NCBI GenBank assembly: GCA_010909165.1
Contig: VJWM01000044.1
Coordinates: 2,108,001-2,172,000 of the forward strand
Reading direction: 5' to 3'
From: Anthoceros angustus
Taxonomy: Eukaryota > Plantae > Anthocerotophyta
Length of the DNA: 64,000 nucleotides
Of this stretch, positions 1 to 63,830 are shown in pieces; the first letter of the stretch is position 1, and each line of letters begins with the position of its first letter. A program made the translations under genes and the position numbers. The notes under the pieces are model-generated. The model searched no databases. It worked only from the letters and a program-made list of their open reading frames with translations, and was not told the DNA's origin.

Positions 1-994
1 GGCCTCATAGTGGTATTGGTAAAATTTCCGGCCTAGCTGGCACGGTTGCTCGGTTAGGCAAAACACATTATAAGTCCTCTCGGGATGGTGCCATGGGTTC
101 TAGTAGCGAACATGGGGAACAAATCGTCAGTTTATTCATCGTTGGGGTTTGGTTCACTTTCAAAAGGAAACAAGGCATATTTTGAAGGGTAACTTTGATG
201 TATAGAATATTGCATGAACATGTTGTCCCATGCATTCTTGTAGAAACAAATTTAATAGGTGCTATGGTAAAATATTTTTCAAATTGTGAAAATATAAGTT
301 TCAAGGCTTGTTTTGAAGGCCTAACCCATATGAGCTTAACCCATGAAGGTCTTGAAGGGGCTGGTTCGGATAAACCCTTTGCATGCCACACGAGTTCATC
401 ATGAAACTCACTTTATCTAGAAATTGCCTTTCCATCCAGAAATAGCCATCAACTTATGGATCTAGGTCAAAGAGGTTTATAATACACTATAAGAACTCGA
501 GCAAGATAGTCTATAACAGGTCGTAAGAATCATGTAGATTAGGGATTAAATGCTTTAGCAATGTGCTCCATCTTTTTAAAAACTCATAACATAAGCTAGG
601 ATTTCTAAGATTGGAGGTTTTTTGCCATGCATGCACCTAGTGTATGAAACTATAAGGACCAAGTTGCAATACCGTTTGAATTGGGAGAAGGTAAATACTT
701 AAAAAACATAGTAATCTAAGATTCCTAAGATTGGAGGGTTTTTGCTATGTATACACCTCATGTATTTTTTGAATATATAGACCTTATTATTGCAAGAATA
801 CACCATAGTGAAAATATGCTGTAATTAAAAAAATATAGCATACCTTTTTTGCATGGCCATAACAAATGGTGAATATGTCTGAATGTATATTATTTTAATG
901 ACTTAAAATGTGAATGACCTAGGGAACAAATAAGGGCAGCATGTCACATGAGGCGGTTTACATATGGGTAGAGAGTTCAAAGCTCTCACAAATA

Positions 995-4988: not shown

Positions 4989-6615
4989 ATGGCTGCTGCT
5001 AGAGCTAGCGGGCTCGCACGGTTTCAGTCCATGAACTTGCATGAGGAGTACAGGAAGGCCTGCAGGACCAGCTCCTACGTCGAGCTGTGGATGAAGGCTC
5101 ACTGTCAGATGAAACAACAGCCTCTCGACTCTGGCAGCAAGTCTGTAGGTGACGCGTTGGAGGCCTTGAGCAAGATCTTCTCCGTGCCCAACAAAAAGCA
5201 CTTGGTCAAGTTTTTGTCGCTTAAAGACGATTCCACAAGGAGCGACAGCGCCAGCAGCAGGACTCCGGACTCTGACAAGATCGATATCATTGCTGCTAAC
5301 CTCTTGGACCCTGATCAGGTAAGGTAGAGTCGTATCTGGTCTAGATCTAGATCTGTGTCAGGAGTGAGTTTTTGTGACGGATCTCCTATTGGAATTCTCA
5401 CAGGCAGAAGTGGATGCGGTGCTGAGAGACATGGACAACCTGTGGGCCACCTCGGCCTCCTTCTTCAAGCTGGTTCTGGACTACTTTGACAACAGCCTGA
5501 AAGCATCAGATCTGTGTGGCGAGCTTCTCAAAAGTGTGGCGCAAGCCCGAGAAAACAACAGGATTGTGGAAAGTGCCATGAGCATCATACACTCGGAGAG
5601 CACCTTAGATCCCGTCGACACCTCGCAGGCAGCTGACACCAGCAATTCCGACGCCGACGACTCCATCCTGTTATCCGAGGACTCCAGCAGCAGCGGCGCT
5701 TCCCGCAGCAGTAGTTTATCCAAAGCTGCTGATGGTTGTCACCCGATTGATATAGATGACGAGCTTTCCTCCGCTGTCTACTCCCACAGCCATCACAAAC
5801 GCAGCTACATGCTCAGATCCGTCCACCAGGAGCTTCACAGCTACGTCGAAGCAGAGAACCCGTTCTTCGACATGGAACAGTTTCAACCAGTGTTAGGAGG
5901 GTTCGCTGACGTGCAATGCCGTCTGGACAGGAAGAAGAGAAAACTGGATACGCGGATGCGGATTTGCAAAGGAATGGTAAACATCTGTTCTGTTGTGCTG
6001 GTTACTACCTGTGAAGCAGTAGGGGTGTTAAGGGCAACCAAGGATGGAAAGGATCGGACTGACTCCGTTGGGTCTCCTATCAAGGGCTGTCTACAGAGAT
6101 GCTTCTATAACAGCAACATGAAAGCGTTCAAGGTTCAGGTATGGCTTGATCGGTGCTTGAAGCGTTCAAGCACTTCTTCGTGTGGACCTGTTTGCGTGTT
6201 TACTCACACTGAAAAAACGTCCACAACAGCTTGATGCAGCATCCAAGGGCACATACGTGGTGACTCAAGACCTCGACACCATCAAAAGGCTAGTTGCACG
6301 ACTCCGAAACGAGGTCGAACATACCAAAGGCAGGATAAGGTTTTGGAATCGCCAACGTGATGACCAGAATCCCGTTAATGTACAAGCCTCTTCCACCTTG
6401 AGACTCAGATATGTTATCTGTATCCGATACCTACCTGTTTGTTGACCTACGCTTGTGCTTGCTTGCAGGTCATGGTCGACCATCTAACAAAGAATCAGGC
6501 AGTCTGCTCCCAGCAGCTGGATGATCTTGAACAGCACATTTACCTGTGCTTCATGACTGTTAACAAAGCTCGGACCCTCATGGTTCAGAAAATTCTGTCG
6601 AAAGTAGCTCCATAG
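4989..6615 (+). CDS. UPF0496/DUF677 family protein, 4 exons (4989-5318, 5404-6138, 6230-6373, 6469-6615)
   Basis: Motifs [72 protein letters not shown] and [19 protein letters not shown]. Three phase-0 GT-AG introns join the frames. The third donor (GTTAAT) is weak. Confidence 0.88.
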
Positions 6616-6935
6616 CCTTGCGTGTAACCCTGCCGACAGTAGGACACCGTGTGTAGTTACAACTGTAGAACCTGTACTGTTAAAACTTACAAAATTGACG
6701 ACATGCTGACAAAAGCAAACATGGACCGATCCCTTCAGTACACTGGAAGCTTTGCTCACTCGAAACCAAAGACCTTTGCTCATACATCACGACATTTGAA
6801 CACTTGTTGTTAGCTTTTCCAACCAGCTTGGCCGCTTTGCTCCGTAGAAATAGTGAGCGGGAATCTGAGAGAGCTGGTCTGAAGCCATGAAACCTGAATA
6901 CGGCACACCAGACGAAAGGCAGTCATTAAGAGCTG

Positions 6936-8224
6936 TCAATCCCAAATGCTGTGCAAACTTTGTCGGTCGCTGGAAGCATGATGGAAAGCAACAACCAGCA
7001 AAAACTTGTATTGGGCAACAAGTTGCGGACCTTCGATGTGGTGAACTATCTTTCCAGACTTGATCAGTAAAACAACTGGGGTCTTTTCTATCTTCATTGC
7101 CCCAACCAGATCCACCTCAGTCCCAGCATCCAATTTGACAGCCTGCAATGCCCAAAACGGTTCATTATCCAGGTGAACCAGATCCGATGACCTGCACGGG
7201 AAAATGGAACCTTGTTCCCAACGTACCCGAACTGGTACTCGTGTCCAAATGGTATCCACCATCTTCTCCACCTCTTTCAACATTTGCCATCCCACACGAC
7301 CTCTGAAGAAGAGCAGGACAAGCCAGGACGTTAGGGCTCACACCAAAAGAGTTCGATACCTGGAAACAGCTTCAAAGACAGATGACAGGCGGACGGTACC
7401 CTGTCCCATATCGTTCATACACATAAACCACCACAGGACTCATGTTATCGAACACAGTGGGTCCCCATTCTGCAGCGGTTGTCTCTGACGAATCCTTTCT
7501 GATAGTCTTCATCCCAATTGAGGTCAAGCTCGTCATCACTGCCACTATCGTCTTCCTCTCCCGCTGTCCTATCCCTGGTCAACTTCACTTTTTTCTTCGT
7601 CAAAGAACTCCGACACTCTGAAGCCCCAGCCACTCTCCCCCTCAGGAGGCCATGTAGGGTCGTCTTCGTCCACAATAAGAGGATAGTCCTCGTCTTCGTC
7701 CTCGTCATAGTCGGGATCACTAGCACGTAACCTTTCCAACTCTTTCTCAATCCTTGCGTGCAGGGTCTGTCTGCCCTTCACCAGTAGAAGCGGTCCCCAC
7801 GTCCTCTTCATCATCCACTTCCGTTAAGGGCTCCTTCGATGTGGGCCGGCCTCCAGCACTACCCACTGCCACTCCAGTTCACGAGATACATCCTTCTCTT
7901 GCTCCTCAGGAACTTTAACCCTCCTGGGCCGTCCTCTCCCTCTTTTCTTCTCAACCTCCGGCGCAATCTCTTGACCTGCGGTGGAACATCTTATGCCTGT
8001 TGCCACCCTCGTAGCCTTCCAGTTACAGGTCAATGTGAATGGACGATCACCTGCCCCTGCAAAACAGAACCATGTTAGAATAGCATCCTCACAGGGAATA
8101 TGAAAAGGAGCTTCGAGAGGGAAACCATACAACGGATTCCCGAATGTCCATCCTCCACTGCATCCAATAACGATAACCTAGGAGCAGATGCCACTGTTCC
8201 AAGCCATCGGCCCGCCGCTGCCAT
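6936..8224 (-). pseudogene. MRL7: RCB/NCP (MRL7/SVR4)-like plastid thioredoxin-fold gene with several frameshifts
   Basis: IVDEDDPTWPPEGESGWGFRVSEFFD, TTAAEWGPTVFDNMSPVVVYVYERY, WQMLKEVEK and AVKLDAGTEVDLVGAMKIEKTPVVLLIKSGKIV match the MRL7 family. The blocks lie in different frames without introns between them (at least 3-4 shifts in 7480-7870). Confidence 0.82.
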
Positions 8225-9170: not shown

Positions 9171-9651
9171 ACCATGCCGATAGTCGGACTCCTGTAATAC
9201 AATTGTAGATACATACTGTTAAAACTTACAAACTTTCACGACATGCTGACAAAAGCAACCGTAGTCTGATCCCGTCATTGTGCTGGTTGCTTTGCTGACT
9301 CAAAACCAAAGCACGTTGCTCATCCATCACACCCTTCCCACACTTGTTGTTCGCTTCCCGACCAGCTTGGCCGCTTTGGTTCTAAGAAATAGTGGGCGGC
9401 AATCTGACAGCTGATCCGAAGCCATGAAACCTGATATTCACACCCGACGAATGGCAGTCAACAAAAACTTGTCTTGGGCAACAAGTTGCTGACCTTCAAT
9501 GTGGTGGACCGTTCAGCTACATCAAGCAGATCTGAAGTGGAAAATGCCTGTGCTGCTTCTGCTACTCCAAGGACATAGGCCAGTTTTTTGGTGAATTTGA
9601 TCGGAGGACATTGGACAGTTGTGGAGCTCCCTGTGCTGCACATCAATTCAG

Positions 9652-9890
9652 CTTCCCTTTTCTCTTTTTGGGTTGTTTCTCCTCGGACTTCGGGGGTAGA
9701 TGAGATTTCCCATCTCTTCTATTACTAAGGCCTACTCGTTATAAAAACCTCGTGATTAAGCATCCTGAGCTTAGCTTAGGCACACATGGTACAATTTGTT
9801 AAGTTGTTAGGTACCAAGTCCCATGATGGAAATCCGTCCATAGTGGACTTCAATAAAATTCTTCTTCTTCTTCTACTCTATTCATTCAGT
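9652..9890 (+). mobile_element. 3'-UTR remnant of a CRE-clade non-LTR retrotransposon, interrupted by SINE copy 2
   Basis: CTTCCCTTTT..CTTTTTGGGTTGTT.CTCCTCGGACTTC..GGGTAGATG.GATTTCCCATCTC.TCTATTA.TAA..CTACTC|TATTC matches the minus-strand sequence at 63496-63600 that follows the QRVSIALQKAQ ORF end. Confidence 0.8.
9738..9872 (+). mobile_element. 5S-headed SINE-like element, copy 2 (5'-truncated, internal deletion, CTACTC target-site duplication)
   Basis: GTGATTAAGCATCCTGAGCTTAG..GTACCAAGTCCCATGATGGAAATCCGTCCATAGTGGACTTCAATAAAA(TTC)n. CTACTC flanks it at 9732-9737 and 9873-9878. Confidence 0.85.
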
Positions 9891-13693: not shown

Positions 13694-16600
13694 ATGGTGT
13701 CTTGGAATAACCTGTGTCGCTCTCCGGCGACGGCCAGGTTGAATCCGGCGCTGCAGCAGTATTACGCGGAGGAGACGGAGGAATTCTACATCAATCTCGC
13801 CAATGGGTTGGATAACCTGGTTGTGACGATGGGGGCGGATAACGTGCGGGTGGAGTGGCTGGAGCTTGCGGTTTCCTTTCTGCGATCCACGCATTCTGAG
13901 GTGCAGGTTCTGGTGGATAAGCTCATCCACTATGCGTCTCCGAGTATAAAGGTGAGCTCGAGGGCGTCGCCTCGCCCTGCTGGCCTTGTCTTGTTTGGGT
14001 TTGTGGGATTCCTGCTTCACAATGCTTGCTGATTCGTCCTCTCCCTGCTGGGTTGGGCTGTGGCAGCCTGAGTGGATGGAGGCCTACATGGAGGAAAGCG
14101 GGAGGCTTCTGGAAGTCTGCGAGAAGCTCAAGCCGGGGATTGAGCGAATCGAGAGATATGAGATGTGTGTGGAGCTGGCTTCCCGTGCGCTCTCGAATCT
14201 GGATCTGGATGCCATTCAGGCTGACCTCATGCGATGCCTCACTCGGGAAGCAGCCAAAAGTAGGAGCATGAAGATGACTCCTGAGGAGGACCCGCCTTTG
14301 AGGAGGAGGGCTCCTCCGAGCAGGGAGTCCTTCGAGTTTCCTGTCTCAGCCTCCTCACCGATGGACACCTCTCCGGTCATGCCCAGCTCTCCTCTCAGGG
14401 TGCTGGATGTTTGCAAGAAGGCAGACAAGCTGATTCAGTCCATTGAGTCCATGAATCTGGGCAGCAGTGCTCATTCCTCTGGTAGACACGGTGGAGTGTC
14501 TGAAGGTGCCCTTGCTCGTGATGCCGTGTCCTTGAGATCACAGTTCATTGCGCTTGATCAGCACATTGGGGGGGATGAGCAGCTGGAACACTGGCAGTAT
14601 GGCATGGAAGATCTGGAGTCGCTGGTGGCGGAGGCGGAGAAGCTTCTGTACATGAGGAGACCTGGCAGCTTGACTGAACCACCGTCTCCTCCTCCTGGCC
14701 TGTTTGACGGGCCTGTTCCTATGCTTCCACGAGCCTCAGATACTGGCAGCCCTTTGCGTCCCTTCAAGATGGATTCCAACTTCAAGATAGACATCTCTCC
14801 TTCCAAGTCTTCTGACAGCTCCAGCTCACCTCATAGCAGTAGGCGTCGATCAAGCGAGTTCAGGTCTGGATCTCGTAAGCCTCCTATCTATCCTCATTCT
14901 GACAGACTAACGGCCGATACCAACAGTGATGCGGAGGTGACAAGCAACAGGCACAGCAGCCGAAATCTTTTAAGTGAAGCAGATCCCACCAGCAGCAGGC
15001 ATAGCAGACAGGTATCAGGTGACTCTGTCTGTTCGGTGGCTACCACGTTTGAGCAGATTTCAGCTCCCATCATCTCTCAGTTTGAGGCCAGCTTGACGGC
15101 TCTTCGTGAATGCAAGGAGGAGATATCCAGGGAATGGACGTCTAGTAGAAGAATGGAGACCCAGAAGTTGATTGCGGATGCAGCCATCTCTTCCAGGAGT
15201 GGCATGTCTGCAAGCTTTAACAAGTACTTTAGAAGCCGCCCGAGTATGGAGTCAGGCAGGATGAGTGGTAGCCGAAGGAGGTCGTCGACAGAAGGGAGTA
15301 AGCTAGCACAGTTTCTTGAAACCCTGACCAGTGACAATGAAGAGGATGGGGTACCGGAAAGAGGGGTGAAAAGAATTTCTTCAGACCTGAGTGATGCCCA
15401 CTTGCGGTCCGAGAAACCAATGCAGGCCATGAGCCCCATCACGGAGAGGGAAGATGGTGCTGCTACCGACGTTTTTGCGATGCGGGGTAGTGTGGCGGGA
15501 GTAAGCAGTAGTGGGGATATGGTTGTGCATGATGAGCCATCAGTACAGGCAGAGGTGTCAGAGAAGAGAGACTTGCCGAAGGTCGGACCGGAGGACACCC
15601 ATCAATCATTGAAGGGACTGGCAGGACAAGATTCTCCAAGGTTCCCATCTCGAAGTGCTCCATATGTGGCGAGTGGTGGAGAGCAGGTTGCTCAGGGGTC
15701 CTCACAACAGTCAGAGGTGCCAGAAAAGAGAAACTCGAGGAGGGGCAGACCTTACAGAGGTCTTCAGGCAGGGAAAGGACCAATACCAGATTCTCCAAGC
15801 TTCCTAGTCCAAGGTGCTTCGGCAGTGCTGGACAGTGGGGAGCTGGTTGCTCACGAGACACCAGCTCAGACAAAGCTTCCAGAACACGGAGATTGGACGA
15901 GGGGCAACAGAGCTGACAGAACTCGTCAGGAAGTGAAAGGAACGGGACCTGATTCTTCAAGGTACAAAGTCCCGGCAGCGGTGAAAGTACCTATAGGTGG
16001 GGAGGTAGTTAGTCATGAGCCACCACAGGCACAGGCAGAGGAGGTACTAGCAGAAAAGAAAGACTCTCCGATGAATAGAACCCAGCAGGTAGGCAAAAGC
16101 TCAGATTCTCCGAGGCGGAGTGTGAAGGGTCTCTTCTACCTGGGCAACCCAGAAGGGAAGGACAGTGTGGAACCTCCATCCAATGTCGAACAGCAGCAAG
16201 CCGAGTCTTCTCAGAGTAAGAAGGGGCAGGATCCGAAGTCGAGCCCTCGAAGGCGAATAAGCCAGAGTCTGGATGAGATTGCAATCGAGAGGCTCCACGC
16301 CGAGATGGATCCTTTTCTTTTCAGGGCTGCTAGAGGGGACGATACAGAGTCTAGCACTAGTAGCCAGGCTCCTCTCATGCTGGAGGAAGATACTGCTCGC
16401 TTTGGACGGGAGGAACAGGGATATACCAGTACCACAAGCAGTAAAGGGAGTGGTGGACGTACGCACAGAAGAAGTGGAAGTCTAGATGCAGCAACGCGTG
16501 CGACAGGGAAGGGGACATGGCAGAATGACAGGACGGAAGCCATACTGACGGCTTATTTGACTAGAAGGAAAGCTGAGAGTCGGCTTCTTTCTCTCAACTC

Positions 16601-18749
16601 TGAGATTACAGAGGAGAGCCGTTCATCCTCTGAAAGAGCCAGTCCAAGTGGAAGGGACACTGGAATTACAGTGAAGGTGGAAAGGGTGGATGAGTCTGAG
16701 AGTGCCTCTCTGCCCGAGATGTTCCCTGAGGAAGTCACTGATTTTAGGAGAAGCTCACGGCGTCTGATGACTGGGGAATCGCGGGCTCTGGAGCAAGCCA
16801 GGGGGTCATTGAATGCCAGAGTAGGAGACGTGAACAGGGAGCCTTTGACGGACCTGAGGAGTAAGAGCTCAGATGCATTCAGTGTTTGGCGAGCGGGTCA
16901 ACTGTCTACTGATGACTCTACCAATGCTGCCATCGATGCTCGAGAAGAGCCAGCCAGGCACTTGAGACCAAGCGGGAGAGTGGAGCCTCAGAACGTGTCA
17001 AATGTAGTGGCGAAGTTTGAATCCTTCTTCGATGCAGAGTTTGATGCAAAGCATGACATCAAGGGTGCAGAGAAACAGGTGCCGAGGAACTGGTCAGCAG
17101 ATTTTGCACCCAAGGTGAAGGTGTACGAAAATCCTCTGCACAGACCTGGGCCTGAGGGAACCTTCCCGGCTCCGCTGATGGGGCGCAGGACGAGCAGGGA
17201 TATCCGCCGCAGCATGGCACCGGCATCTCCTTCTCGGTTTTGGAAAATCGAGTCTCCTGCTCGGTTCTGGAGGAGGAGTACCTCGCCTGGTCATTTTCGA
17301 GGTAGATCTATGCAGACAAGCCCTGCTGGTAGGCAGCGACAGTCTTGGGCATCCTCCACCTCTCCCCACAGACTGAGCCTGAATCTTTTCAGCCATGTGA
17401 AGCATTGGATCAGTCACCACGGAGATCATGATGACGAGGATGTCAGGGATGGTACAGGACCCGGGAACCTGAGAAGATCCAAGTCTGCTAGCAACCCCAA
17501 GGCAAGTCCCCATCATCGTTATGCTGTGGTGAAAAGTCCTGGTAGATTGAGTTTGAACCTTTTCACGCTCCAAAAGGGTGCAACATCCTTTGTGAGGAAT
17601 TTCGGGTCTGCGGCTATAAAGCAGTGTGCACATCCCACGGGTGGCAGTTCCAGGTGGACCGGCCTCGGAGGTGTGTTCCTGGCCACCAAGGCATCCACAG
17701 GGGTTGTTTCAAGCTTTCTTCTGTGGATTTTGGCAAGAAGTGATGCAGATGTGCATCCCAGCTTGCTGCACGCGGACGTGGAGTACACCATTCGCAAGAT
17801 AGAAAATCACTGGTCAAGCTCGCTCAGCAAGTTGCAGGAAAGGGTGTCCAGGTTCGACGTGGATCAGAGGCAGACTGTCCCTTCCAGGAGAGGGGCAGAT
17901 GCAGGTGCATTTGAACCTAGCAGACAAAGTCATTCTTCTGATGACAGGAAAGGGAAGAAACGGTTTAGCCTGGATATCAAGCCCCGTCCCTGGAAGTCTA
18001 CTGACCACGGTGACAGGAGGCCTACGGAGCAGGGCAATCCCAGTCGGTCCTTTAAGCTGGAGAGACCGGCGTCTTTGGATCACCACAGCACGGAGCCGGC
18101 AGAAGGGTCCGAGAAGCCTTACAAGTCTAGAATCAGCCCCTGCTTCCACATCCAAGAGCTTAAGGAAGTGCACAAATGCGTGGAAGAGCTTCACGTGGGG
18201 CTTGAATTCCTATTCTCAGCTTGCCTATCCGCCCTGGGAAAAAACTCAGCGGCGCTCGAGCAACTGCCGCAGGAGAAGATTATCAGAGAATGCATACCCT
18301 CAGAGAGCCCGTCAAACTTGAGCAGCAGGAGGAAGCTATTTGACACAGAACACAAGGACGGAGATGTTCACGGAGACGGAACTTCGAGCCCAACCCTGCC
18401 CCTGGAAGCGAAGGACAGGAAAATGAATGTGGACGGAGCGAAAGGTGCAACCTTGGACCCCACCTACTCGGAGTTGAAATCGCACAGAAGGAAAACCACC
18501 GAAGGCAGATCCCAGCCTATTTCGTACGCTGGGTCCAGTTTCTCCTTCGAGTTGGACAATGTGAACAAGGAACAGGTGAAAGCGGTGGAGGCCATTTTTG
18601 AAGACTGGAGATCAGGCAAGATGGCTGGGACGGTGCGCAGATTGCATCAGAACATGGAAGAGTTCCGTTCAAGCCTGAAGACCGTCTCCCGGGAGGTGGA
18701 TGATCTTTGTGCAGAGTTGGAGAGTGGTAGGAAAACGCTAGCAGAGTAG
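13694..18749 (+). CDS. Very large (about 1,646 aa) BPS1/DUF793-family protein; exons 13694-13951 and 14067-18749
   Basis: N-terminus VEWLELAVSFLRSTHSEV..EWMEAYMEESGRLLEVCEKLKPGIERIE and C-terminal blocks GLGGVFLATK, WSSSLSKLQERV, QELKEVHKCVEEL and SREVDDLCAELESGRKTL are collinear with the family. A phase-0 GT-AG intron is followed by an unbroken 4.7-kb frame. Confidence 0.8.
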
Positions 18750-19579: not shown

Positions 19580-21587
19580 TGAAGCACATATTCTGGTGTT
19601 TTTTGATGGTATGAGTGGAGAGAGAGACTTTGTGGAGGCACCAACCACGCTAGGCTATGGGAGCGTGAGCATATTATATGCGTTAATGTTATATCTACCC
19701 TTGAGTGTGATAGTAGACTATTCAGGATCTCTCTCAATATTGTCTACTGTGGCTCTTGTTGGGTATAGATAGTCCACAAGGCTAATGAGGTCTTAGGGCG
19801 CGCCGTGGGTGAATGGCACTTGAAATCGATTTTATCCTCATAGCTTAAATGTGATGGATGCATGGCATCGGCCATGGTGGGGATTTTCTACTGCCATAAG
19901 AATTGACATCAGAAGTTTAGACCTAAAGTATGGATGACTTTTGTTGACATGAAAAGTCCAGGCTTAAAGTATGGAGGACTTTTGTAGTTCTGAAACGGAT
20001 TCGAGATGTGGCTTATAAATTATTACTGCCTAATTGGATTTCTCTCATAATGTGAAACCATTTTGTGATTTCAAAAGAGAATGAGGATATGAATAGGAGG
20101 GATTATGTAAATTCAACACATACCTCATAGAATGTAAGAGATTATTGAATTCTTGATGGAGAGAGGAACGTCTGTTGTTTATGTACCAAAGTATTTGGTA
20201 AGATTTCGTAGTCATGCACATCTGTCTAGGTTTCACTTGAGATTAAAAAATAAAAGAAATAAAAAAACTAATTAATAGCTGTCATTTGAGAAGATGTATG
20301 TACATATTAGTGTCGAGAAGATGTATGTATTAATGTTGCATGCTTCCGCAAATCTCCTACTAGTCAGGACTAGGATTTTCATCAGTGTTTTCTACATAAA
20401 GTCTTGTTCACGTGGCGGATGGAGGAATTAGCGCAGCCACTAATGAAGAGCTGAGCTGCCTAAAGAAACTCCGAGAGGTATGCAAGAATCCCCATGTTAG
20501 CAGCGCCTAGTTGAGGCGAGCCTGCGGATATATAAGGGCTAGAGTAAGGCCTTTGAAGAATGGTCACCCAATTCATTCTGCGCTGCAGCTGAGGGAGGGA
20601 GTTGTGGAGAGCCTAGCTAGTGAGCTTGTCGTTGAGTTGGGTGTAGATAGCCAGACTCAGGTGTTGTATCTTGCGAATAAAGAGCCAAGCGCGTGTGAAG
20701 CTGAAGCTGGACTGCGACTGCTGGACTCGCAGCCGCGCCGAGCGCTCTGCTAGGCTTTCCCACATTGCGTGCAGCGGGGGCAAGGAGCGGGAGCGGAGGG
20801 GCGGAGAAGGGGGACACAGAGAAGGAGAAGGGGCGGAGGAGACGGGAAGGGAGGGGAAGGGACCGGATCGTGGAGGCTGGCATTGCGACGAAGCTTGATC
20901 TGGGAGCAGCGGGCGAGCAGAGGGCGGGCAGGGCGGCTGTGTGTGTGGCTGCTCTGATGAAGAGCGCGGGGAAGATGTGAGTGCATCCACTGCAGGCGAG
21001 CGGGGCGTGGGTCAGCAGTGATTGCATCCACTGCAGGCGAGGTGGGCGCGCTGGTTTCGAGCTGCGGCCCGGGGAGATGTGATTGCATCCACTGCAAATG
21101 AGCAGTGCATGCAGGCGGGCTTGACGTGCAGGCGGCCACTGCAGGCAGGAAGGCAGGCGTGCGTGCAGCTTGGATGTGTGAGCTGGACGCCCTGTGTTTC
21201 TCGTGCTTCTGAGCTGCCGGTTGCTTGATTCTGCGCTCTCGTGGTTTGTTGAGGATTTTCTAGCCGCTGTCGTGCTTATCTTCTGCTCTTGGAACATCCT
21301 GCTTCTTTGTGATGTCGATTAGCTCTCCATGAAATCTGTAGCTGGGTTGATGCACCTCACTATCTTCTCTGGGCTTCACTTCTGAACAGTCTTGTCAGGC
21401 CAAGGCCTTGTTCCTTCCTTCATGCCTCATTTGGATGGATGTGTGTCAGTCCTAGCTGCTGGTGACTGATCTGGTTCCTGCATCGCTCGTATTCCGCGCT
21501 GAGAAGCGGTGTAGACTATTAGCTCGACAAGGAGGTAGCAGAGGTCAGAGCTTTAAGAACGTTGGAGACAAAGCCAGTGAGTGCATC

Positions 21588-22919
21588 ATGTCAGCCGCCC
21601 CGAGCTCTTCCTTCTTCTCCAGCCTCGGTGCTGCTTTGAAGTTGCCCCTGTCTCCTGCTAGCAACATCTTCGCTGGATCAAGCAAGCGTGGAATCAGCGG
21701 GATACAGAATTTCGATGTCAACCTCACCGACAAGCTGGAGGGCCTGAAGCCCTCCTCCGAGACAGATTTCCTGTCACTACCGTGGCTGTCTTCGGGAATG
21801 TCCATCGTCCTCGCTTCGCACTCGGCAGTGGAGAGCCTGATTCCCGACCTGGAGCAGTCTCCGCTCACGAAGCGAGACGAGAAGTGGGTGTCGGACTTCC
21901 TGGACGAGAGTGCCAAGCTGCTGGACGTGTGCAACGGGCTGCGGGAGGGTGTGTCTCAGCTGGAAGAATGCCAGATGCTGGTGCACCTGGTGCTGCACAA
22001 CCTGAACGTGAACTCTGCGGCCGCTTTCACGGAGTCCCAGCTGCAGAAGGCGAGGAAAGCGGTGCTGGATTTCCAGGCTCTCACAGAGAGGCCCCCGGGG
22101 GACGACGACCAGGACTTGTCCTGGCCAGAGAGGACAATCAGCTCTGGGAGCTCTGGAAGGCTTTTCTCGCTGGAGAGGAAGAGATCCAACAGCTGGGGGG
22201 TATCCAAGGACAAGGCCGCTCTGCAAAGGCTGCAAAGCAAGTCCAGCAATGGCAGCAGCCACGGAGGGAGCTCTAACGGGAGCAGCTTGCCGGAGCTCCC
22301 GGAAAACGGAAGCGTGGGCAAGTCGGTGAAGAAGTCAGGGGATCAGATCCCGGAGATCGAGCTGCTCAAGAGCATGACGGAGAAATTCCTTCCCCCCAAG
22401 GGCGTTGACACCAGCAAGGGAAGGAACGCCTTCATAGCCGGGATCTACGCAGCGAAGGTGACCACCGTGTGCGTGCTGGGCGTGGTGTATGTGACTCTCA
22501 CCAGCAAGGCTGGCGGGGACGGCCTGAGCCTGCTCATGAGCTGCTCATCCCAGATCAGCCGTCAATTCATGTGGGCTGCGCCTCTTCTGGACTTGCTGGA
22601 CAGGGTGGCCATGGAGATCGGATGGCAGAGGAAGCAGACGAAATTGACGTCCTTCCTCGCGGAGCTGGTGAGGATAGACACCAGCATGAGCCGGCTCCTG
22701 GACATGATCCAAGCTGCTCGAGCCGGGAGAGCGTTCCCCGTCCCTGCTAGACTGGAGGATGAAATGCGGGAGGAACTCACCGTTTTGAAGCAGCACTTGG
22801 AGGATTTCGAGCACGGGCTTAACAACCTGGAGGAGCAAGTGAATGAATTGTTCCGTATGTTGATTGCCAGCAGGACGCAGCTGCTGGATGTGCTGGGCAG
22901 CTCCAAAGGGCTCTTCTGA
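21588..22919 (+). CDS. BPS1/ROH1-like (DUF793) protein, intronless, about 443 aa
   Basis: FLSLPWLS, EKWVSDFLDESAKLLDVCNGLREGV, GIYAAKVTTVCVLG, FMWAAPLLDL and LEEQVNELFRMLIASRTQLLD. First ATG is at 21588. Confidence 0.9.
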   Translation: MSAAPSSSFFSSLGAALKLPLSPASNIFAGSSKRGISGIQNFDVNLTDKLEGLKPSSETDFLSLPWLSSGMSIVLASHSAVESLIPDLEQSPLTKRDEKWVSDFLDESAKLLDVCNGLREGVSQLEECQMLVHLVLHNLNVNSAAAFTESQLQKARKAVLDFQALTERPPGDDDQDLSWPERTISSGSSGRLFSLERKRSNSWGVSKDKAALQRLQSKSSNGSSHGGSSNGSSLPELPENGSVGKSVKKSGDQIPEIELLKSMTEKFLPPKGVDTSKGRNAFIAGIYAAKVTTVCVLGVVYVTLTSKAGGDGLSLLMSCSSQISRQFMWAAPLLDLLDRVAMEIGWQRKQTKLTSFLAELVRIDTSMSRLLDMIQAARAGRAFPVPARLEDEMREELTVLKQHLEDFEHGLNNLEEQVNELFRMLIASRTQLLDVLGSSKGLF

Positions 22920-27789: not shown

Positions 27790-29400
27790 AAAAAGCCCTT
27801 ATATATGCCTACACTTATAAGCAAAACCCTGAATAAAGGCCAGAGGTCCCATGGGGACCCCCAAAATGCGAAGTCCTTGCGAAGAACAATGCCTCCCCTG
27901 TGAAATTGAAGAAAGAGAGCAATGCCAGATAAGGACCAAACCTTGCACTTCAAAATCTTGACCCTCAAACCCAGGCTGGAGAGCTCTGAGTATAAGAGTG
28001 CGAAAGCTTGCCTGACCTTGCCCCCGGATCCTGATATGCATGTCGTCCGCCACGGACGGAAAGAGACACTCCCTGACCGCGCTGGCAGTAACGGCGCAAT
28101 GGCAAAGAGGGCACCGCATCCCTTGCCTCGTGCCGGATACCGAGTTCAGTATAGTGACCCCTTCCTTGGATGGTCCGTGCTGAAACTAGACGGTAGACGG
28201 GGAACTATAGAAAGAGCGGACGAAAGGAATAAGACTTGCCCGATGCCTGCTTGCATCCTTGGGCTCTGTAAAAATTGCCCTCCTAAAGACCATATTGAAA
28301 GCGTTCTCGACGTCCACCTGTAGGGCGACCCCATCTTGATGTGACTCCAGAATTGTCGCGATACCAAACGTGGCTGACTCACAACCCTCTGGAGTGGCAA
28401 TCCCAAATTGCTGGGGGGCAAAGATGCACCTGGAATTGCTCCTGAAAATGGATAGCAATGCTGCGACCTATGAGGCGTAAGCATGCCTCCCCAACGGTGA
28501 TAGGGCGCACTCCACGTGTGGGCTTTTCCATAGCCTACTGGACCTGTGGCCCCCAACACCCGAGAGATCCAGTGAGGAATCTCACCCCTGGCCAGTATCA
28601 CCGCTAGAATGAAGAGCTCTGAGAAACCGCTAGAAGGATCCTCGGGAGCAAAGTAATCGCGAAGGTGATTGTAGACTGTCCCAGATAGACCACACGAAGA
28701 AAACCGCGGGGCAATGGCAAGAGCCCTATCGAAGACTGCCCTGTTGAGATAAAAAGGCTCCTTCGCCACGTAATCCACGATATCCTGTGGAATTAGGTCA
28801 TGTGGGGCCGGATGAAGGGCACGGAGCACAAAGATGGTGTCCTCGGAGGCTAGCGCCACTGGCTCTGGGCGAAGTCCCCGGGTAGCCCTGGCATATTCCC
28901 CGCACGGCCAAGCCAAATGGACACACATTTATAAGAATGCCGTGATTAAGCATCTTGAGCTTAGATCAGTACCTAGATGGGGTGTCTAAAGAGAGTGGAT
29001 GCCCTTGGTGCAAGTAGTTTAGGCACACCATGGTACAAGTTGTTGAGTACCAAGTCCCATGACGGAAATCCGTCCTTAGTGGACTTGAATAAATTCTTCT
29101 TCTTCTTCTTCTAGCAAGAGACACCTCTTGAGCCGTGCCATGGCGAGGTCCTGATAGACCCGATCCACCTTGGTAGCCTCCAGCCTGGATCTCGCTGCAC
29201 ACCCACCCTCCTCCTACAAAGCTTTCTAGTTCCCGGCCTGGAACTGATGGAGATGAGATGCCACCTCTTGATGGCCAAAAGAACCACCCTTAGAGCGACA
29301 AAGACACCGCCGGGGGAGAAAAAGGAGCAGAGTCCAAGTCTTCTCATCCCCAAGTCCAACGCAAGGTGATCCAAAGGAAGCCAATAGGCAAGGGGAATGT
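27790..29400 (-). mobile_element. Decayed CRE-clade non-LTR retrotransposon, reverse-transcriptase region, interrupted by SINE copy 3
   Basis: Collinear motifs across frameshifts: KRCLLL|GRCGEYARA, AMEKPTRGVRPITVGEACLRLI, QQFGIATPEGCE, LQVDVENAFNMVFRRAIF, VADDMHI (catalytic YxDD position) and GLRILGVPMG. Confidence 0.85.
28912..29110 (+). mobile_element. 5S-headed SINE-like element, copy 3 (simplest complete copy)
   Basis: GCCAAATGGACACACATTTATAAGAATGCCGTGATTAAGCATC..GATGGGGTG..GACGGAAATCCGTCCTTAGTGGACTTGAATAAA(TTC)n. Confidence 0.88.
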
Positions 29401-37450: not shown

Positions 37451-37544
37451 TGGGAGTACGTTGCCTCTTCCAAGGCAGGTGGGTCGCCAGCACCCTCCTT
37501 AACTCGTTTTACCACTACCCTTCCACTACCTCCAAATGGCCTAG

Positions 37545-37796
37545 GCCAAATGGACACACATTTATAAGAACGCCGTGATTAAGCATCCTGAGCTTGGGTC
37601 GGTACTTAGATGGGGTGCCTAAAGGGAATGGATGCCCTTGGTGCAAGTAGCTTAGGCAACCATGGGGTGCCTAAAGGGAATGGATGCCCTTGGTGCAAGT
37701 AGCTTAGGCAACCATGGTACAAGTTGTTAAGTACCAAGTCCCATGACGGAAATCCGTCCTTAGTGGACTTCAATAAAATTCTTCTTCTTCTTCTTC
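37545..37796 (+). mobile_element. 5S-headed SINE-like element, copy 4 (52-bp internal tandem duplication)
   Basis: Same head, stem-loop, AATAAAA and (TTC)n tail. The ATGGGGTGCCTAAAGGGAA.. unit starts at 37610 and again at 37662. Confidence 0.88.
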
Positions 37797-63495: not shown

Positions 63496-63830
63496 GAATA
63501 GAGTAGACATTATTAATAGACGAGATGGGAAATCCCATCTACCCTTGAAGTCCGAGGAGGAACAACCCAAAAAGGGCTAATGGTAAAAAGGGAAGTCTTA
63601 GTCCCTCCGAATGCCTTTCCCGTAACTACCTACTTCTGCGCTTTCTGCAGAGCTATGGAAACTCGCTGGCAAAAGAAAGCTACCACAGAGGAAAGGGGGA
63701 GGCCCCTCCAATTCCTGTGGTTGTGATAGGCTTTTGCACACTTTTTAATTAACCTAGAGAAGTCCTTGCCCATAGCCTCATGAGTCTCAAGGGTGAGGGG
63801 GATGAAAAAATGTCCTTTATGCCAACATGC
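63496..63830 (-). mobile_element. CRE-clade retrotransposon: restriction-like endonuclease C-terminus and 3' UTR
   Basis: GHFFIPLTLETHEAMG..FFCQRVSIALQKAQ matches the FxPxxxETxG..QRVSIALQRAQ end of CRE ORFs. It is followed by a T-rich UTR with an 8-bp inverted repeat at 63523-63540. Confidence 0.8.

Follow-up and report, generated by a model that had tools for sequence, protein, structure and literature searches.

An abundant repeat in land-plant DNA is probably a SINE whose internal promoter core is of the 5S type

A short element that recurs four times in the window analysed here (the whole stretch of DNA, 64 kb in length), and whose cleanest copy lies at 28912–29111 on the + strand, raises the question of whether plants possess SINEs whose head is of the 5S type. 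SINEs derived from 5S rRNA occur in fishes, mammals, reptiles, insects and one fungus. In a 2024 review, those with 5S promoters are listed from animals only, with none known in plants (PMC10946416), and 5S-related SINEs exist in fungi (PMC5063351). The searchable literature, outside the scope of which lie Repbase and most subscription journals, holds no later report of a 5S-derived SINE in plants, and in two hornwort genome papers SINEs go unmentioned. The suggestion in the preliminary description of this DNA, that the element might be an undescribed class for plants, agrees both with that review and with our literature search. It is our view that the element is probably an abundant SINE, dependent on a LINE and read by Pol III, with a 5S-type core as its internal promoter. 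Below, we describe what is known of the copies and of the family to which they belong, the evidence for and against a 5S-type head, the insertion of the element, and the way in which it might be propagated.

Sequence comparison across the window located four copies of the element, as had been claimed for it, and self-comparison of the window revealed no copies beyond these. A 21-mer from the head has five matches in the window, two of which are accounted for by copy 1, and a 24-mer from the tail has three; neither probe found a match in any of 100 shuffles of the window. Copy 3 (28912–29111, +) is the cleanest and is free of duplications; it may reach ~28893 by way of a diverged remnant of a 5' hairpin. 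Copy 4 (37530–37796, +) starts within the loop of this hairpin, has its 5S-like core at 37564–37628 and ends in a (TTC)6 tail at 37779–37796. Within it is a perfect 52-nt duplication (2.1 units, 37610–37717), at the bounds of which is found the short repeat ATGG. Copy 2 (9738–9872, +) has a complete tail, is truncated on its 5' side at the 5S-equivalent position ~+33, and has suffered an internal deletion between two AGCTTAG repeats. Copy 1 (993–1216, +) is composed of head and body only and contains a perfect tandem duplication of 78 nt (two units, 1026–1182); the whole 3' module has been lost from it, so that stem-loops, AATAAA and (TTC)n are all missing. The description of every copy as ending in a stem-loop, AATAAA and (TTC)n was accordingly right for copies 2, 3 and 4 and wrong for copy 1. 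Copies 1 and 4 differ from one another by 6–10%, yet the internal duplications are 100% identical; for this reason, the duplications look much younger than the insertions that contain them. In the contig data described below, many family members have 'skips' and 'goes back' joints, comparable with what deletion has done to copy 2 and duplication to copies 1 and 4. An ORF of 45 aa passes through copy 3 and has no relatives in a protein search, and the assertion that the element lacks coding capacity holds in practice. All four copies are on the + strand within 37 kb, for which, with n = 4, chance may be the explanation.

The extent of the family was assessed using contigs (98 Mb) of a public run from the same or a near species, termed X1, and those of X2, a further run made on that sample, with contig pieces counted at a likeness of at least 80%. 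Pieces matching only 28896–29116 number 1669 in X1 and 82 in X2, and the flanks of copy 3 are at single-copy depth in the contig data. As the 1669 pieces of X1 match the element alone, the family must be highly repeated. In X2, which is guessed to be RNA, the element sits within long contigs, and none of the runs recorded as RNA contains it. Contig depth is several-fold greater over the 3' half of the element than over its head, which fits 5' truncation, a tail that is common to other families, or both. Variable 5' truncation had been proposed at the outset, and is upheld by the truncated copy 2 and by the lower family coverage over the head. Amongst contigs that extend upstream of 28912, the consensus sequences from X1 and X2 are near-identical for ~21 nt and unrelated beyond; the consensus of these upstream loose ends is ATGTGTG[T/C]CCAAATGGCTTAG. 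This agreement followed by divergence places the 5' end of the family ~21 nt upstream of 28912. The original estimate of ~200 bp was thus correct in that the element is short, and fell short in that the family begins further upstream and has a full length of ~220 nt. The first 10 nt of the family pair with GGACACACAT to give the 5' hairpin, within or near which copies 3 and 4 begin, and the family 5' end corresponds to about 5S position −4. The exact tail pattern gave 0 matches in collections of viral contigs and genome contigs, and looking up one protein of the window by exact sequence returned no record.

For comparison with genuine 5S genes, plant 5S arrays were taken from metagenome contigs by means of a 25-mer and confirmed with Rfam at 78–114 bits. 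The region of likeness in copy 3 is at 28931–28995 (+), which corresponds to 5S positions 37–101 and aligns without gaps to the plant 5S consensus with 37 identities in 65 positions; over the same 5S positions, copy 1 has 39/65 and copy 4 has 40/65, again gap-free, and all three lie on one diagonal. The majority sequence of the head, aligned ungapped to 480 real plant 5S copies, gives 39–43/65. A hand count of ~40 identities in 62 positions had been reported in the preliminary description, with the matches said to cluster in the A box, the intermediate element and the C box, and both statements are borne out by real plant 5S genes (37–43/65). The identities are concentrated at AGAAC.CCG, at TTAAGC (box A), at AGA (intermediate element), and at GTACT and GATGGG (box C). 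In copy 3, the equivalent of box A is at 28944–28958, the intermediate element at 28961–28966 and the equivalent of box C at 28974–28991 (all +), with limits that follow Xenopus numbering; the three are in the order of a 5S gene and, without any gap, at its spacing. The canonical core of the plant C box is given as AGGATGGGTG (PMC10853983).

Several statistics support this likeness. Scored without gaps, the majority head reaches 18; 20 000 dinucleotide shuffles of it average 7.5 (sd 1.17) and go no higher than 16, which is also the best score elsewhere in the real window. A profile HMM was built from 113 plant 5S sequences and used to search both strands of the window with filters off. Copies 1, 4 and 3 rank first in the window, with E values of 0.034, 0.074 and 0.3, respectively, and in the same register; the match is at 1015–1079 in copy 1 and at 28931–28981 in copy 3. 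The 105-nt majority head obtains 12.7 bits against this profile (E = 0.008 for a search space of 128 kb). Added to this is the position of the box A equivalent, which lies ~53 nt from the family 5' end, compared with +50 in 5S genes. If transcription is to start at the element's own end, about that distance to box A is required by a type-1 promoter. Runs of four or more T residues are absent from copies 2, 3 and 4, and copy 1 has acquired a T5. The position of box A and the lack of T4 in copies 2–4 would be consistent with transcription by Pol III.

There are also results that point the other way, and they limit the claim. Rfam cmscan of the whole window returned neither a 5S gene nor any other meaningful family. 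The Rfam 5S model RF00001, a scan with which had been recommended in the preliminary description, gave no match on copies 1, 3 and 4 either at the gathering score or at E ≤ 10. It is because of this failure that the 5S likeness has to be regarded as confined to the promoter core of ~65 nt. In a search with a covariance model made from 39 plant 5S genes, with filters off, copy 4 came top but with E = 0.24, level with unrelated places. By blastn, the element found nothing in 122 fetched loci, 120 of which are loci with real 5S genes that show no similarity to it. When scored individually at +1/−1 without gaps, single copies reach 13–15, and unrelated places in the window 15–16; the latter carry a high composition bias in the HMM search. 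The fold of the element head is unlike that of 5S rRNA (z = −0.1), and identity outside 5S positions 37–101 is near chance (13/36 and 5/18). Judged on the nucleotide sequence, then, the likeness to 5S is modest yet real, and limited to the promoter core. A closing helix proposed by the plant 5S covariance alignment, in which GCCUAGGC would pair with GCUUAGGC at a distance of 119 nt, is not relied on; it was set aside since the same sequence also forms the tip of the 5' hairpin.

It is possible to interpret these results differently. The element might be a genuine LINE-dependent SINE with a head that did not come from 5S rDNA, the likeness having arisen by chance or convergence, in which case the promoter would come from an unknown small RNA or would lie within the 5' hairpin and the TATA-like stretch TTTATAAG. 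In favour of this are the lack of significance with both covariance models, the empty blastn result and a fold unlike that of 5S, together with an identity of only ~60% over 65 nt and a remainder of the 5S gene that is unrecognisable. We nevertheless consider it unlikely. None of the 20 000 shuffles attains the score of the majority head, the 5S profile places the copies first in the window, and the match is gap-free, preserving both the box spacing and the distance to the 5' end that are seen in 5S genes; moreover, no tRNA and no other Rfam family matches the head. The retention of the core alone is likewise a property of recognised 5S-derived elements. In Ajax and in lepidopteran SINE3 conservation is limited to the promoter, with divergence everywhere else (PMC10886601), in HaSE3 the similarity to 5S is highest at boxes A, IE and C, and in Cassandra elements a 5S core of ~70 bp with fixed box spacing is common to all (PMC10853983). 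The TATA-like stretch itself, at 28918–28935, precedes the box A equivalent by ~10 nt and has counterparts in copies 1 and 4; at this place 5S genes read CCCATCAG.

Alternatively, and very improbably in our estimation, the 5S module might have been captured from, or be common with, a Cassandra-like module borne by an LTR of the same genome, which would still make it a type-1 promoter. That only a core of the Cassandra type has been retained would be in keeping with this, whereas the published idea runs in the opposite direction, from SINE3 into an LTR (PMC10886601); no LTR element with a 5S module lies in the window. The Cassandra TRIMs found in vascular plants, and Ajax, found in nemerteans, do resemble the element in that they have a core of ~70 bp, compared with ~65 nt here, with boxes at fixed spacing, and are non-autonomous retroelements that use this 5S core as a Pol III promoter (PMC10853983, PMC10886601). 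In Cassandra and Ajax, however, the module is inside LTRs and is accompanied by a PBS, a PPT and 5-bp TSDs; the element lacks LTRs, PBS and PPT, and instead has a microsatellite tail, 5' truncation and, in one clear case, a 6-bp TSD.

Returning to the reading that we prefer, a SINE with a 5S-type head, we turn to the 3' module, which is structured. In copy 3 it consists of a first stem-loop, GGTAC..GTACC, at 29032–29051 and a second, AAGTCC[GACGG-AAAT-CCGTC]GGACTT, at 29052–29086, followed by AATAAA at 29088–29093 and (TTC)6 at 29094–29111 (all +). Folded over its last 75 nt, copy 3 forms these two stem-loops with an energy of −19.5 kcal/mol (z = −2.35). The same fold of the last 75 nt has z = −2.78 in copy 4 and z = −1.89 in copy 2, and in copy 2 a change from C to T retains the inner stem as a G-U pair. 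The tails of copies 2, 3 and 4 comprise AATAAA and (TTC)4–6, and outside these three SINE tails the window has no (TTC)≥4 array. In eight or nine contigs of X1, only the last ~55 nt are in common with the element, and are preceded by a different, well-conserved sequence (agreement 0.92 and 0.67). Such a junction of a different sequence with the common tail would be expected of a partner LINE or a sister SINE. The preceding sequence is absent from the window, as is any partner LINE with the same end; the partner is inferred.

Evidence for insertion comes principally from copy 2, which is flanked by a 6-bp target duplication, CTACTC, at 9732–9737 and 9873–9878. An empty paralogous site is present at 63501–63574 (−), with 89% identity over 74 nt to the DNA upstream of copy 2 (9664–9737); in it CTACTC occurs once and is followed by TATTC, matching the sequence downstream of copy 2, so that the paralogue runs uninterrupted as ...GTCTACTCTATTCC.... 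The empty paralogue and the 6-bp duplication together establish copy 2 as a true insertion. The last C of its TTC tail is also the first C of the target duplication. For copies 3 and 4 there is no convincing target duplication, only weak candidates such as CCTTCC at copy 4, which is confounded with the tail. The DNA into which copy 2 inserted is a dispersed repeat that seemingly ends a few bases past the insertion point (...CTACTCTATTC), and just upstream of this target repeat is a repeat pair, 9200–9509 and 6660–7046, that is 80–90% identical.

The proposal that the element is a SINE is thus well supported: it is short, non-coding and repeated, and it has a defined 5' end, a target duplication with an empty site, and a folded tail. 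The further proposal of a 5S-type head gains support from targeted statistics on real plant 5S genes and from the position of the boxes. Derivation of the head from a tRNA, as in SINE2, found no support, as neither ARAGORN, which found no tRNA gene in the whole window, nor Rfam detected one. Classification of the element itself as a Cassandra/TRIM or a solo LTR was rejected in view of the absence of terminal repeats, PBS, PPT and TG..CA ends and the presence of the (TTC)n tail, the 6-bp TSD and single-copy flanks. It is scarcely credible that, in place of an independent element, we are dealing with solo LTRs or with 3' fragments from a longer LINE: the 3' half is covered several times as heavily as the head, and copies 3 and 4 have the same orientation 8.4 kb apart, as such fragments might, but in two contig sets the family consensus ends ~21 nt upstream of 28912, copy 3 is single-copy on both flanks, copy 2 is a lone insertion with its own TSD, the copies end in (TTC)n and lack the features of an LTR, and none of the large ORFs scanned in the window, one of which is situated between copies 3 and 4, matches reverse transcriptase or integrase. 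Nor did Pfam match any ORF scanned in the interval from copy 3 to copy 4.

The way in which a SINE of this kind might be propagated can be outlined from its parts. It would be a LINE-dependent retroposon of ~220 nt with three modules, namely a head of ~125 nt, a short body and the 3' module. The head would present first the hairpin and then a diverged 5S internal control region, at the spacing of 5S genes and at about their distance from the 5' end. We infer that TFIIIA binds to this head and that Pol III transcribes the element: TFIIIA, TFIIIC and TFIIIB would assemble on the internal type-1 promoter, and Pol III would initiate near the first base and read through, no run of four or more T standing in its way in the intact copies 2, 3 and 4. 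A partner LINE sharing this end would then supply the reverse transcriptase, which would recognise the 3' stem-loops and (UUC)n of the transcript and, through target-primed reverse transcription, insert a copy of the RNA at a nicked target. This process would often truncate the 5' end and leave a short target duplication.

Comparison with known SINEs places the element closest to two groups. The SINE3 group, as considered here, includes zebrafish SINE3, HaSE3 and other lepidopteran SINE3, MEG of the fruit bat, Ped-1 of the springhare, and AfuSINE of Aspergillus fumigatus. In common with these animal and fungal elements, the present one is short and non-coding, with a head comprising box A, IE and box C in which the promoter is best conserved and the sequence upstream has diverged, a 3' end of LINE type, and 5' truncation. 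It departs from them in its land-plant host, in being 5S-like over only ~65 nt, in being missed by the Rfam 5S model, and in its 5' hairpin and AATAAA-(TTC)n tail. The other group is that of the Au-like SINEs of plants, which are mobilised by LINEs of the RTE clade and have a non-poly(A), microsatellite-like end and a structured 3' region that is common with a LINE (PMC6007223); such an end and a structured 3' region are also found here. LINEs and SINEs with microsatellite-like ends show microhomology of the tail repeat with the first base or bases of the TSD (PMC6007223), and this is seen in copy 2. Au-like SINEs, in contrast, have tRNA-derived heads and LINE ends of the (GTT)n type, where the element has a 5S-like head and a (TTC)n tail.

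With a very abundant SINE whose core is of the 5S type, plants would no longer lack a SINE3, and a third solution to the promoter would be added to those of plant SINEs. The element would also be a clean system in which to ask how little of the 5S control region suffices for TFIIIA. It has been proposed that Cassandra originated when a SINE3 landed in an LTR (PMC10886601), a proposal that has had no plant SINE3 to cite because no 5S-derived SINEs are known in plants. It is conceivable, if doubtful, that what we have here is a living lineage of 5S-promoter SINEs in a bryophyte-grade plant, the first in plants, and the source or sibling of putative LTR-borne 5S modules of the same genome. If that were so, it would be a present-day example of the SINE3-into-LTR route by which Cassandra is thought to have been created. 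Being missed by Rfam, and with no tRNA gene detected in the window by ARAGORN, the family probably sits among 'unclassified repeats' in annotations.

The window as a whole consists of land-plant DNA that is rich in genes, of the ROH1-like/BPS1, DUF677, PGG-domain, RCC1 and L-aspartate oxidase kinds. The L-aspartate oxidase has at most 77% identity to anything in the protein collection; its nearest named relatives are those of liverworts (75–76%), followed by those of ferns and lycophytes, and the loci of its two nearest relatives (77%) contain no copy of the SINE. Such distances would fit a non-seed lineage that has been poorly sampled, hornworts for example. On the strand opposite to copy 3, the open reading frames 28146–28928 (−) and 29111–29374 (−) are interrupted by the element. 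The 260-aa piece opposite copy 3 has no Pfam match, and its nearest ESM Atlas clusters include ones bearing RVT_1 (score 0.94), which suggests that this region is a decayed retroelement; no (TTC)n end of this candidate is present in the window. Finally, an open frame of 1587 aa at 13986–18749 (+), without a Pfam match at E ≤ 0.001, has as its neighbours ROH1-like/BPS1/DUF677 genes at 5374–6234 and 21462–22919.
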